A DNA stretch of 64,000 nucleotides from Podarcis muralis (Eukaryota). The notes beneath the pieces are model-generated. The model was not told the origin of the DNA, did no database searches, and worked only from the letters and a program-made list of their open reading frames with translations. Positions 31,801-35,370 of this stretch are shown here, piece by piece (within the stretch, counting starts at the first letter, position 1; each line of letters opens with the position of its first letter). The stretch spans positions 38,068,001 to 38,132,000 of the forward strand of contig NC_135670.1 of NCBI RefSeq assembly GCF_964188315.1. The letters are read 5' to 3'. The position numbers and the translations under genes were made by a program.

Positions 31801-34800
31801 TTTGCATACAAAGCAGATGCCCTACCACTGAGCTATGACTCCTCCCTCAAGGAATTGCGCAAGGTGACTTGCTTACCTGCTCCTGCCAGAAATTAAAGCA
31901 CTCCACAGCCACAGCCTCCTTTCATCTCAGACAAATGGCTTCAACACACCTTGATTCCCAAGAAGAAATGGCAGTGATGGAATAGCCAGTCAAGTGACTC
32001 CAACATTGCAGCTTTTGAACTGCTGCTATGCTACAGTCACATGTTCGCTGAAGAGAAACCTCAGAGATCACAGCACTTTCAGTCTCGTTATTTCAGTCTT
32101 CCTCTGCCCTAAGAGTGCAAATTATGGTTCGCAGTGGAATGCACTAGGTAAGAAAACCACTCTTAGGTCAGATGTAGGTAAACCATCTACAACTGTGAAC
32201 CGCCTTGAGACCTCTGGGTATAGGGCGGTATATAAATTAAATATATAAATAAGCCCTTAGAACACTGGAAATAAGCTATGTAATTGACAAGTCTTTTTCA
32301 CTAGCCCTCTGAAGAAAACAGAAATGAAATATCAATGTTCTTAGGCACCAGCATAAAAGACCTTTGGCTCCTGGGAACCAGTTGCTCAAAACTATTCTCC
32401 CAATCTTCCTATTTTTTAAAAGCAGGGCAGAAAAGAACAGTGACATTTTACCTGCATTTTCTTGAGCTTTTCTTCCCGTCGGAGAAGAATTTCTATGATT
32501 GGAATAACAAAAGCTAAAGTTTTTCCACTGCCAGTTACCTGCAGACATGAAAACAAGAGACATCAAAAATAGTTCTTTCAGCAAAAGGCCAAAAGTCACA
32601 GGGAAGTTGAGCAGCAAGACACTTACCGCCTCAGCTGCCACATCCTTATTTGTCATAAACAAAGGAATCGTTGCAGACTAGAAGAGAGGCAGAAGTGTAA
32701 AAAAAGGATTATTATTTCATTTTAAAAACTTAGTCCCTGTGTAATTTTCAAAAGGAACTCAAGATGGCTAACCAATCCAAGCATTCCAACAGTATTAAAA
32801 TATGGAACAATCCACATTCCAATGCCCATCAAGAAATCAAGGTATTCACATAAAAACCTATAATAAATTTCCAAAAACGGTCAACATAACTAAAATATCA
32901 AACAAAAACCAGAAAAAGAAATTATGGGGCAATGCTAAGTGACAGGATAGGGAACCTGTGACCTGCCAATGTTGTTGGACACCAATTCCCGTCAGCCTCA
33001 GCTAGCCATGACGAAGGGCAGGGATGACGGAAGTTGCAGTCCAACAACTTATAAAGAGTCACAAACCCCCAAACCTTGTTTTAAAGAGAACTGCAGGCAG
33101 AGGGAATATTGGGGAAATGATCTTTCCATTAAAGCAGGTGATGTAAAGCAGATGCTGCTGCTGGAACCTTAGTCTTTTATTTTATTTATTACATAAATTT
33201 ATTACATTGGCACTTTCTCTGCTGCCTTTTTGGTGCCTATTGAAGACCTTCCTCTTTCCACAAGCCTTTTACGCTTTCCCAGTCTGCATCTGTACAGTGG
33301 TACCTCGGGTTACAGACACTTTAGGTTACAGACTCTGCTAACCCAGAAATAGTACCTTAGGTTAAGAACTTTGCTTCAGGATGAGGACAGAAATCGTCTG
33401 AAGGTCTGAGGGACAGTGGACCAGCCCCCTGCTGAAAAAGTTTGCTGACCCCTGGTCTAGAATGTTGATCACTGTTTTGTTGATTTCTAGTGAGTCATTT
33501 GCTGACCCCTGGTGTATTTCTTGTAGGAAGACAATGTGATTTCATGGTGCTTATGTACGAGGCACAGCCCTCTCGATCTTCGTGTTGGGCACCCCTGGCT
33601 CTCCCGCTTGTGGTGGCGGCGTTGGCAGCGTGTGGACCAGCTAGAGAGCCCTGTTGGTGCTGGCGGTCCCCATGAGCTTGGTGCGGCCGTGGCGCCTGCC
33701 ATCTTGCCTTGCCAGAAGTCAAGCATACTTACTTTTGAGTAAAGATGCATAGGACTGCAAAGGTACACAATCAACTACTCTGAAAGCAGAACGTACTTAC
33801 AGTGGTACCTCTGGTTACGTACTTAATTCGTTCCGGAGGTCCGTTCTTAACTTGAAACTGTTCTTAACCTGAAGCACCACTTTAGCTAATGGGGCCTCCC
33901 GCTGCCGCTTCACCGCTGGTGCGCAATTTCTGTTCTCATCCTGAAGCAAAGTTCTTAACCCAAGCTACTATTTCTTGGTCAGCGCAGTCTGTAACCTGAA
34001 GCGTCTGTAACCTGAAGCTAAGGTACCACTGTATTTCTAACTCACACTTTTCCACAACCATCTTCAAGCCAGGATGCAACATAATTAATATTCCATCCAA
34101 GAGCCATGATTTAAAGGGGGGGGGGGGGACACACCAGTAACAAGAGCAATACATGCCAAAGACGATTAAAACCCTAGAGGGGGTTTTGTGCAAAAATCCA
34201 GGCTCATTTGGGTTGAAGGCTTTGCATTACACATATACATCTAAATACCTAAAACAAAAAAAATTCCTTCCAGTAGCACCTTAAAGACCAACTAAGTTAG
34301 TTCTTGGTATGAGCTTTCGTGTATCTGAAGAAGTGTGCATGCACACGAAAGCTCATACCAAGAACTAACTTAGTTGGTCTTTAAGGTGCTACTGGAAGGA
34401 TTTTTTTTTTGTTTTGACTATGGCAGACCAACACGGCTACCTATCTGTAACTATGCTATGAGATATTATGGAAGGGGATGGAAACTTTGGAAGTAGCTGG
34501 ACATTTAGAGCACGGCCTACTTGGGCCCAGACAAGATTTCCTGGAGTTTGGTGGTGTCTGGAGTAACAAGAAATAAAACCTGAAGCATGCTCAGGTCCAT
34601 TCTACTCTTTGAAGAATGCACACAAGGTAGCAAAATGTTTTATGCGAAAGACTTGAAAGAAACTGCCTGCATGTATTCCCTCCTCCCAACTTAAGCTGTT
34701 ACAAAAGAGGAACATTCCATCAATCATGATTCCACCACTTTCTCATAGTAGGTACATAAGGACTAGAAATGGGTCCTGGAGAAACAGCTCATCTGTTTCC

Positions 34801-35370
34801 TAGGATATCAATTAGAAGAGACTTTAACTTATAAGGTAATGCTCCTTAAAAGGGGAGGGACTAATATGAACTACTAGGACGCTTCTGCCCATTGCATGAG
34901 AAAAAAGCTGGTGCAGTTTTGAAATCAGTGGTTAACTTCTGTTTCAGTGTATCTGAAGAAGTGTGCATGCACACGAAAGCTCATACCAAGAACTAACTGA
35001 GTTGGTCTTTAAGGTGCTACTGGAAGGAATTTTTTTTGTTTTGACTATGGCAGACCAACACGGCTACCTATCTGTATCTAAATACCTAGATAAACACACA
35101 TATGCATATATACAGCGCTCACAAGCATGCTGGCTCTCATCTCTTTTAGGGAAAGAATCACAGAAGTGTGGCGCTGGAAGGGGCCCGGGGAGCCATCTAG
35201 TCCACCCGCTTCCCGAGGAGGGAGATCAGAGCCGGCTCCCTTTCCCGGTCCCCGCTGCCTACCTGCACCGGCGTCATGTGCGTGAAGCCCAGCTCCCGCA
35301 AGGCCCGTCCCACGCCAGGGCTCAGCCGGACGGGCAGCGAGTCCCACGTTCCCTCGGTCACCGTCTCCAT
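19818..35370 (-). CDS. DDX55: ATP-dependent DEAD-box RNA helicase DDX55 (Spb4 family), complete, 14 exons, 591 aa
   Basis: complement join(35263..35370,32627..32677,32452..32538,30464..30555,30293..30355,28815..28964,28087..28276,27535..27617,25982..26113,25301..25393,24980..25094,23501..23669,21694..21986,19818..19967)=1776 nt. Motifs [40 protein letters not shown]; all introns GT-AG. Confidence 0.97.
20743..21107 (-). mobile_element. Sauria SINE, full length
   Basis: Highly similar to 6366..6728; TSD TTTTCAGTCAAG at 20731..20742 and 21109..21120. Confidence 0.9.
21297..21636 (+). mobile_element. Sauria SINE, full length (second subfamily)
   Basis: GGGACACGGGTGGCGCTGTGG head, GTTCGAATCC box, CCCTTTACCTTTACC tail; imperfect TSD TACTAGCnCTAGATG. 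Confidence 0.9.
23910..24522 (-). mobile_element. Tc2/pogo-type MITE, long variant with GC-rich internal tandem repeat
   Basis: Same TIRs and TA flanks as 7462..7710. Confidence 0.8.
24651..24707. repeat. 28-bp tandem duplication (GTCCAATAGGCACCGAGGGGAAGTAGAA)
   Basis: Direct reading. Confidence 0.85.
26476..26827 (+). mobile_element. Sauria SINE, full length
   Basis: Same head, box and tail as 21297..21636. Confidence 0.9.
29303..29562 (-). mobile_element. Tc2/pogo-type MITE
   Basis: Reverse copy of 7462..7710, TA flanks. Confidence 0.8.
29648..29766 (-). mobile_element. tRNA-Lys(CTT)-derived SINE with CR1-type tail
   Basis: minus: TAGCTCAGTTAGTAGAGCATGAGACTCTTAACATCAGGGTTGTGGGTTTGAACCCCATGTTGGGCA then CR1-like ...CAACTCTACAATCCTAAGATTC. 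Confidence 0.7.
30988..31510 (-). mobile_element. CR1 LINE 3' fragment, relatively young
   Basis: [24 protein letters not shown]...[16 protein letters not shown] and (CTATGATT)n tail. Confidence 0.9.
33800..34031. mobile_element. Tc1/mariner (Tigger-like) MITE family B
   Basis: CAGTGGTACC...GGTACCACTG termini with TA flanks; partial relative at 33295..~33395. Confidence 0.8.
34321..34358 (+). ncRNA. Minimal type I hammerhead ribozyme motif (second family, copy 1)
   Basis: GTAT CTGAAGA a GTGTG catg CACAC GAAA GCTC/ ATAC: 4-bp helix I, 5-bp helix II, palindromic AGCT helix III, CUC triplet. Confidence 0.8.
34949..34986 (+). ncRNA. Minimal type I hammerhead ribozyme motif (second family, copy 2)
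   Basis: Identical core to 34321..34358, 628 nt downstream. Confidence 0.8.

Follow-up and report, generated by a model that had tools for sequence, protein, structure and literature searches.

The element at positions 34239-35088 of the window (the whole 64-kb stretch of Podarcis muralis DNA that was analysed) is a single insertion of the Penelope-like-element (PLE) type, in which two copies of a highly repeated hammerhead-bearing unit bracket a piece of non-coding DNA that is neither abundant nor expressed in the data examined. It was probably produced in one event, when PLE machinery inserted a composite template (unit, interior, unit) that had been assembled by read-through or by template switching. 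The insertion is old and belongs to a known kind, the PLE insertion with minimal hammerheads, and the element is non-autonomous at best.

Boundaries and layout of the insertion

The outer edges are marked by an exact duplication of 13 bp, ATCTAAATACCTA, at 34239-34251 and 35076-35088. This AT-rich 13-mer is absent elsewhere in the window; 0.05 occurrences are expected in 64 kb by chance, and none of 100 shuffles gave two. The final A of the left copy is common with the adjoining arm and, with one ambiguous end base per side, the length of the duplication is 12-13 bp. No separate duplications were found around either of the two unit copies individually.

Next to the left edge lies an inverted arm of 72 nt (34251-34322, minus strand), recognised by self-comparison and by the PLE signature in PMC8557442 as a 5'-truncated copy of the unit without its tail. 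Its complementarity is 99% to the second direct repeat and 96% to the first. The outer end of the arm falls at a unit position ~60 nt past the ribozyme cut, whilst the inner end stops within the palindrome of helix II, where a GTGT common to both (microhomology) links it to the direct copy. The first unit copy, A1 (34319-34449, plus strand), consists of a hammerhead (34321-34358, predicted cut after 34354) and a further 95 nt that terminate in a 35-nt tail (34415-34449). It is followed on the same strand by the interior, B (34450-34946, 497 nt), which has 41% GC and a CpG o/e of 0.14; its final ~13 nt (34934-34946) may be part of the unit, giving a B of ~485-497 nt. The second copy, A2 (34947-35075, plus strand; hammerhead 34949-34986, predicted cut after 34982; tail 35043-35075), is probably a full-length unit.

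The direct repeats align at 34319-34414 and 34947-35042 (96% identity, spacing 628 nt) and again at 34403-34453 and 35030-35080 (98% identity, spacing 627 nt). The tail is missing from the arm and is thus one-sided, of the 30-40-bp class. Each unit copy has a private substitution that is absent from the arm: T at 34401 in A1 (A in the family majority) and G at 34999 in A2 (T in the family majority). The earlier note, made from the letters alone, had described the 13-bp duplication, an inverted arm of ~70 bp and tandem hammerhead+tail repeats of ~130 nt each, 628 nt apart. All of these are confirmed, and its reading of them as a single, non-coding, PLE-mobilised insertion is borne out by the 13-mer edges and the PLE signatures.

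Both hammerheads read GUAU-CUGAAGA-A-GUGUG(CAUG)CACAC-GAAA-GC-UC^AUAC. Cervera & de la Pena (2014, PMC4209133) define the minimal hammerhead by a short helix I and an unpaired nucleotide 5' of stem II. The core of this type, CUGANGA...GAAA...UH, is present as CUGAAGA, GAAA and UC at 34325-34354 and 34953-34982, with a helix I of 4 bp (GUAU/AUAC), an unpaired A 5' of helix II (GUGUG/CACAC) and a helix III, A-GC-U, that forms an AGCU palindrome (1-2 bp with a small palindromic, dimer-capable loop). A strict descriptor, requiring at least 4 bp in helices I and II and a palindromic loop III, matched only these two hammerheads in 64 kb and had no match in 100 dinucleotide shuffles. Judged by their sequence, both ribozymes fit the PLE minimal (dimer-type) kind, and the cleavage sites predicted after 34354 and 34982 (distance 628 nt) agree with those proposed earlier. 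The core, the 4-bp helix I, the unpaired nucleotide and the AGCU loop are likewise those of PLE minimal hammerheads (PMC4209133; Lunse et al. 2016, cited in PMC6765202), which by the same accounts are massively dispersed as single copies and occur in turtle and snakes.

An Rfam covariance search of the element gave no hammerhead, either at gathering score or at E<=10. The hammerhead of the window's autonomous PLE was missed likewise, so the Rfam models do not cover this design and the negative is uninformative. Matches below threshold were to miRNA hairpins only, because of the long inverted repeat. A full-text search with the exact hammerhead and stem sequences found no literature match to this hammerhead family.

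A high-copy unit around a low-copy interior

Public reads show the hammerhead+tail unit (~130-141 nt) to be repeated at very high copy number. Over 34212-34467 and 34916-35107 the contig depths add up to 0.5-2.1 million, whereas the single-copy flanks reach ~45-55. Non-autonomous and very abundant, the unit constitutes a mini-PLE family in the Podarcis muralis genome, and contigs of a second species contain it as well. RNA reads on the unit come from both strands, and 84% of them extend into dissimilar sequence, which places their origin in other copies. No read ends are listed at the cut sites, where coverage derives from other family copies. Fourteen DNA runs from five studies each contain at least half the words of the 1.5-kb stretch with the element, and five of those runs (two studies) contain most of the 628-nt unit. 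Within the species the element is therefore widespread.

Just upstream of A2, depth drops from ~750,000 to 62, so members of the family do not usually have B upstream of them. The low copy number of B is read from a single bin of DNA run X1 (34852-34915, depth 62, a single-copy level; bins 34468-34851 were filtered out of this profile), from the lack of any read pile-up over B in four runs of DNA and RNA, and from the word shares. B yielded one contig of 353 nt in run X15, at an intron-level depth of 3.6, and zero reads in X33 and in the X23 raw RNA-seq (~1.9 Gb). RNA evidence on B comes from two data sets, tissue not given. B contains no ORF of more than 41 aa, its eight ORF pieces gave no Pfam match, it has no Rfam match and there is no other copy of it within the window. 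Comparison of the interior and the repeat with the autonomous PLE and the whole window (tblastx, blastn) gave nothing above chance, and no tRNA was found near the element.

The most probable history is as follows. PLE machinery would have inserted the composite into the first intron of a DDX55-like gene on the minus strand, at an AT-rich target of which 12-13 bp were duplicated in the process. The composite would have comprised the inverted, tail-less partial unit (the arm), A1, B and A2, each unit being a minimal dimer-type hammerhead plus 95 nt finishing at the reverse-transcription start site. The 36 nt that precede the cut are retained in both A1 and A2, which means that the RNA serving as template was uncleaved, as in PMC11167929. 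B could have been co-mobilised by either of two routes. In the first, a single transcript of a donor locus would have taken in B and two adjacent units, a kind of transduction by read-through; in the second, the reverse transcriptase would have switched from one unit RNA to another. Against read-through, a second (donor) copy of B is predicted, and the one informative bin looks single-copy. The earlier note had offered, besides a retrozyme family, the capture of ~500 bp of host DNA. Capture, from a putative donor, is the better fit, since only the ~130-141-nt unit is repeated genome-wide. That PLEs transduce flanking DNA had been given as established; no statement to this effect was found in the literature, where the nearest case is the retrotransposition of host genes in trans (PMC8557442). 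Nor was a demonstration of template jumping by PLE reverse transcriptases found in the PLE literature examined.

Transductions of 3' or 5' sequence by L1, and chimeric retrocopies made by template switching, place unique non-element sequence within a single TSD-flanked retro-insertion. The present locus resembles these in carrying unique sequence within one such insertion, although the enzyme class differs and the captured DNA here has an element unit at each end. A flanking pair of this kind would be expected if the internal initiation site of the unit is where reverse transcription has to begin.

Alternative histories

It is unlikely, although conceivable, that pairs of units of the mini-PLE family repeatedly enclose and carry unrelated unique sequence, or that a 628-nt circular RNA is made in an unsampled tissue such as the germline. 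If recurrent carriage were true, the PLE machinery, for which initiation at an internal site is obligatory, would act as a vehicle for host DNA, in a PLE-specific form of transduction of which no description was found in the PLE literature examined.

A retrozyme reading, in the form of a working low-copy element, is unlikely. It supposes that the 628-nt unit is transcribed and cleaved by its two hammerheads acting as a dimer, and that the product is closed into a circle from which a PLE reverse transcriptase makes a copy. This reading would account for two complete minimal hammerheads in tandem orientation and for the head-to-tail junction between units seen elsewhere in the genome (joint 35036 to 34321), and four of five reptile genomes are reported to contain non-LTR retrozymes of PLE-repeat origin, the family consensus sequences in the whole species sample measuring 51-972 bp (10.64898/2026.07.22.740005; its supplements hold Xenopus primers only). 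The element shares with animal non-LTR retrozymes (PMC7229834; Li, Clavereau & Pollet 2026 preprint) a non-coding, hammerhead-bounded form, kinship to PLE terminal repeats, low GC and a TSD of >4 bp, but the data examined give no sign that its 628-nt unit is repeated or expressed. Where a retrozyme is a multi-copy, usually tandem unit, the pile-up here is limited to the 130-141-nt part in four runs, with the filtering in X1 already described. Where abundant unit-length linear and circular RNA is expected, the two RNA sets show none: the joint from 34982 to 34355, the back-junction that the earlier note proposed to seek in RNA-seq, is not among the joints listed, and depth over B is 0 in X23 and 3.6 in X15. 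Where the unit RNA should be stable and highly paired, its MFE (-161.1 kcal/mol) matches that of shuffles (-163.4 +/- 7.4 kcal/mol; z = +0.31). The proposed 628-nt family is thus not upheld, and production of circular RNA from the locus is not supported; the locus is probably now an inert fossil.

The predicted folding also speaks against a working ribozyme pair. The arm pairs over 72 bp with A2 or A1, burying one cleavage site, and would, if transcribed, lock a ribozyme in the duplex. When the two ribozymes are co-folded, it is the helix II palindromes that pair, not helix III, a result that weighs neither for nor against the pair. Even when dimeric, minimal hammerheads of PLEs show poor cleavage (PMC4209133), and PAc, the one PLE hammerhead of Anolis that was assayed, needed its own protein for cleavage (PMC11167929). 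The inserted copies keep the sequence upstream of the cut, and the host gene is transcribed from the opposite strand. The argument that two copies in cis allow dimerisation leaves aside that the arm would sequester a ribozyme in any transcript containing it, and that the host pre-mRNA is the antisense strand. Tandem hammerheads within a TSD are insufficient for a retrozyme call; the intervening unit must be both repeated and expressed.

An internally deleted or heavily truncated autonomous PLE, with B left over from the internal sequence between the parent's terminal repeats, is improbable. In its favour, the parts are arranged as in a PLE with pseudo-LTRs, and internally deleted yet transcribed copies are documented (Chlamys-3, PMC8557442). 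B, however, has no reverse transcriptase or endonuclease remnant (tblastx against the window's PLE; Pfam), and a family of ~10^4 unit copies should leave many partial internal copies, whereas depth is single-copy directly upstream of A2. A history in two steps, with the arm and A1 inserted first in hairpin form and B with A2 landing later exactly at the end of the A1 tail, is very improbable. PLEs are described as homing to copies already in place (PMC6765202; PMC11167929), but the second landing would have had to fall within one base of the A1/TSD boundary without a duplication of its own, and would still need an element with B upstream of the unit, of which the depth profile shows none. Two independent unit insertions around ancestral intron DNA can be dismissed: the abundance of the unit permits neighbouring insertions, but the exact 13-mer at both outer boundaries would have to match by chance and neither unit has its own duplications, and on this geometry both the independent insertions and an ancestral intronic origin of B were rejected.

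Relation to PLE insertions and to the host gene

The autonomous PLE of the window, at 9428-12960, has the same hammerhead direct terminal repeats and upstream inverted truncated copy, and the mirrored layout with an unrelated repeat and no ORF, as claimed earlier, holds. The one-sided tail is 35 nt here and 28 nt in the autonomous copy; the repeat ends 95 nt and 93 nt past the ribozyme cut, respectively. The partial-tandem direct repeat, the adjacent inverted 5'-truncated copy and the 30-40-bp tail at one end are those of PLE insertions described by Craig et al. (2021, PMC8557442), as are the end point ~90 nt past the cut, the AT-rich target and the uncleaved template (PMC8557442; PMC11167929). 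Frangieh et al. (2024, PMC11167929) report two internal start sites of reverse transcription, cleavage and extension of both strands, and AT-rich targets, with all of which the features of the element agree. The element differs from PLE insertions in lacking an RT/GIY-YIG ORF and in the sequence between its repeats, which is low in copy number and has no relation to any PLE in the analysis. The arm, the one-sided tail, the AT-rich target and the GTGT microhomology also agree with known Penelope insertion signatures. The unit resembles the SINE-like hammerhead elements of Schistosoma in being short, very abundant, non-autonomous and hammerhead-bearing; those, as cited in PMC6765202, have canonical hammerheads and a Pol III promoter, and no promoter was identified in the lizard unit.

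The locus provides a clean, fully bounded PLE signature in a vertebrate gene intron, with arm, one-sided tail, internal initiation and uncleaved template, and it records the ability of PLE machinery to move non-element DNA. The expressed exon 1 of the host, a DEAD-box helicase gene, lies at 35263-35436 on the minus strand, with the ATG at 35370 and the splice donor following 35263. The order of DEAD-box motifs on this strand supports the helicase assignment. From that order and from what is known of human DDX55, we take the host to be DDX55-like, in keeping with the intron 1 location given before. No PDB entry matched the 36-aa peptide encoded by exon 1. The element lies ~175 nt into intron 1 and is antisense to the gene, so the ribozymes are antisense to the host transcript, a point absent from the earlier note. 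The consequence for the biology of the host gene is small, apart from the inverted repeat of 72 bp that now lies ~175 nt away from the splice donor of exon 1.

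Architecture of the composite insertion

The element at 34239-35088 is bracketed by a 13-mer, ATCTAAATACCTA, found at 34239-34251 and again at 35076-35088. Between these lie an inverted arm of 72 nt (34251-34322), a first direct copy of the hammerhead-plus-tail unit (A1, 34319-34449), a 497-nt interior of different sequence (B, 34450-34946) and a second direct copy (A2, 34947-35075), so that the layout of 13-mer pair, arm, two repeats and interior described in an earlier note is borne out. Even when one mismatch is tolerated, the 13-mer has no third site in the 64 kb; it is expected by chance 0.05 times, and two sites were seen in 0 of 100 shuffles. 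Two substitutions and a single indel in a T-run distinguish A1 from A2, a divergence of 1.5% which indicates that the insertion is not very recent. At least half of the words of the element-bearing stretch are present in each of 14 DNA runs from five studies, and the element is therefore widespread in the species.

The arm is complementary to A2 at 99% and to A1 at 96%. Relative to the family majority letters, A2 has a private G at 34999 and A1 a private T at 34401, and the arm carries neither change. The T-to-G change at 34999 destroys a TAG and thereby opens a 166-aa ORF (34963-35463) that starts in helix II and crosses the tail into flanking DNA; the stop is kept in the family majority, and the ORF was rejected as spurious. 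A run of G lies at 34118-34131, between a SINE-like repeat and the element.

Both hammerheads of the earlier note were recovered at their predicted positions. A1 and A2 each open with GUAU-CUGAAGA-A-GUGUG(CAUG)CACAC-GAAA-GC-UC^AUAC, with cleavage predicted after 34354 and after 34982, a spacing of 628 nt. A strict descriptor, combining the core, two helices (I and II) of 4 bp or more, a palindromic A..U loop III and, optionally, an unpaired base, matches the window at these two motifs only and has no match in 100 dinucleotide shuffles. Their design is that of the minimal hammerhead of Penelope-like elements (PLEs), in which helix I measures 4-5 bp, one nucleotide is left unpaired 5' of stem II, and helix III is vestigial and palindromic. 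This motif is reported to be massively dispersed, with turtle and snakes among its carriers (PMC4209133). Rfam gives no hammerhead match at the element; since the window's intact PLE has a hammerhead that Rfam likewise fails to detect, this negative is uninformative.

Abundance of the unit and nature of the interior

Four data sets were aligned to 33700-35600 at a likeness of at least 85%: DNA contigs (X1), probable RNA contigs (X15), a raw stranded RNA-seq run (X23) and the contigs of a second species (X33). Summed contig depth is 0.5-2.1 million over the arm and A1 and 0.5-0.75 million over A2, against ~45-55 for the single-copy flanks, and it drops from ~750,000 to 62 in the bin immediately upstream of A2, some family contigs matching back as far as 34934. 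The unit is found in the second species' contigs too. RNA reads on it come from both strands, and 84% continue into unlike sequence, so these reads derive from other copies. We infer that the unit is a discrete mobile element of ~130-141 nt with roughly 10^4 copies, depth not being itself a copy number.

Elsewhere in the genome, a DNA contig passes from a T-run/GTTTT end through GTTTTG to the next hammerhead start (window 35036 to 34321). This joint marks an array in which ~100-nt units lacking the tail follow one another head to tail, as a true short retrozyme would be laid out. Among the repeats of 33700-35600 the raw RNA run differs most often by A>G, at 16 places, and by T>C, at 24 places, compared with 5 and 9 in the DNA contigs; the excess could be due to A-to-I editing of repeat hairpins or to the sampling of different family members. 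A ~220-bp repeat at 33797-34018, probably a major squamate SINE, exceeds the unit in depth (up to 14 million versus ~45 for single-copy sequence). It also occurs in the second species, has RNA reads on both strands and many 'opposite strands' joints (~33818-33822 to ~34017-34018), and gives no tRNA or Rfam match.

B has 41% GC and a CpG o/e of 0.14, with no ORF above 41 aa and no Pfam or Rfam match, and it resembles neither the window's PLE nor any other part of the 64 kb. It gives no pile-up in any of the four runs. Its depth in X1 is 62 at 34852-34915, the single-copy level; the X1 bins at 34468-34851 are empty because a contig was filtered out, X1 containing 76% of the words of the 628-nt unit (the stretch between the two predicted cuts), and this gap is uninformative. 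X15 has one 353-nt contig, which carries four differences and whose depth of 3.6 is similar to that of the flanking intron, and depth is zero in X23 and X33. Folding of the 628-nt RNA gives -161.1 kcal/mol, where shuffles give -163.4 +/- 7.4. Thus, B belongs to no abundant family, shows no detectable expression above the level of the intron and is no structured RNA, all of which tells against the earlier reading of the element as retrozyme-like. The zero RNA-seq depth also argues against B having been copied from rRNA, a mitochondrial transcript or another abundant cellular RNA.

Route of insertion

PLE insertions form partial tandems that give pseudo-LTRs; an inverted copy, truncated at its 5' end, adjoins them, and just one end carries a tail, of 30-40 bp (Craig et al. 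2021; PMC8557442). For an Anolis PLE, both DNA strands of AT-rich targets are cut and extended, the substrate is uncleaved RNA, and reverse transcription begins inside the RNA, at two neighbouring sites ~85-92 nt beyond the ribozyme cut that are separated by the tail (Frangieh et al. 2024; PMC11167929). In the present element the end of the direct copies lies 95 nt beyond the cut and the start of the arm 60 nt beyond it, the 35-nt difference being the tail; in the window's autonomous PLE the repeat end lies at 93 nt and the tail measures 28 nt. Both direct copies keep the 36 nt that precede the cut, which indicates a template that was not ribozyme-processed. The arm and A1 share GTGT, within the 14-nt helix II palindrome, plausibly a microhomology joint. 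All of the element's boundaries match known PLE behaviour.

Because the 13-mer brackets the whole element and neither unit has a separate duplication, B is likely to have arrived with the units. The template would then have been unit-B-unit, either co-transcribed from a donor locus with two units ~500 bp apart, or made by a reverse transcriptase that, at the 5' end of one unit RNA, switched to another RNA and then started afresh at the internal initiation site of a second unit RNA. That B looks single-copy sits a little uneasily with a donor locus that survives.

The autonomous PLE (9428-12960, minus strand) lies in a (TA)n tract and looks intact: its terminal repeats, of 300 nt, are 100% identical, its 989-aa ORF matches RVT_1, and it carries an inverted arm of 59 nt and a tail of 28 nt. 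At E<=0.001 Pfam gives no GIY-YIG match. In sequence, neither its repeat nor its hammerhead is related to the unit, which it therefore probably does not mobilise.

Published work already covers PLE hammerheads and their dimer logic, the signatures of PLE insertion and the non-LTR retrozymes of animals (PMC4209133, PMC8557442, PMC11167929, PMC6765202); these retrozymes derive from PLE repeats and were reported in 4/5 reptile genomes (10.64898/2026.07.22.740005). The locus is a further example of an already known element type.

Ribozyme function and the host gene

A working retrozyme, with the 628-nt unit as a functional hammerhead-bounded element, is quite unlikely. The 34982-to-34355 back-junction, proposed earlier as its RNA-seq signature, is not among the 15 listed of 89 joints. 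In predicted folds the arm and A1 form a perfect 57-bp helix (-105 kcal/mol, z = -22); in the whole-element fold the arm instead pairs with A2 over 72 bp, with the cleavage-site C34982 paired with 34311, and one helix II palindrome pairs with the other. Since the arm pairs one unit, a transcript containing it would have at most one free ribozyme, whereas the design needs two, and the suggestion that two copies in cis permit dimerisation would fail for such transcripts. Published PLE minimal hammerheads, moreover, cleave poorly even as dimers (PMC4209133), and cleavage by PAc, the one Anolis PLE hammerhead tested, required its own protein (PMC11167929). The arm/A1 hairpin (34267-34398) scores against Rfam mir-559 (E = 4e-12) and mir-3688 (E = 3e-10), both below gathering scores; membership was rejected, the scores reflecting a long perfect hairpin.

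Public RNA contigs and stranded raw reads identify 35263-35436 as an expressed exon with RNA from the minus strand. It has an ATG at 35370 and encodes METVTEGTW...GFTHMTPVQ, after which comes a GT splice donor. Further along the minus strand, in order toward lower coordinates, lie the remaining DEAD-box motifs GSGKT (~32532), PTREL (~30534), DEAD (~28855), SAT (~28224) and HRCGR (~25084). We provisionally take the host gene to be DDX55-like, since the peptides agree with DDX55. The exon and motif order place the element in intron 1, ~175 nt from the 5' splice site. The ribozymes are antisense to the host transcript, so host transcription cannot supply ribozyme-sense RNA. As a result of the inverted repeat, the DDX55-like pre-mRNA also carries a 72-bp duplex ~175 nt into intron 1.
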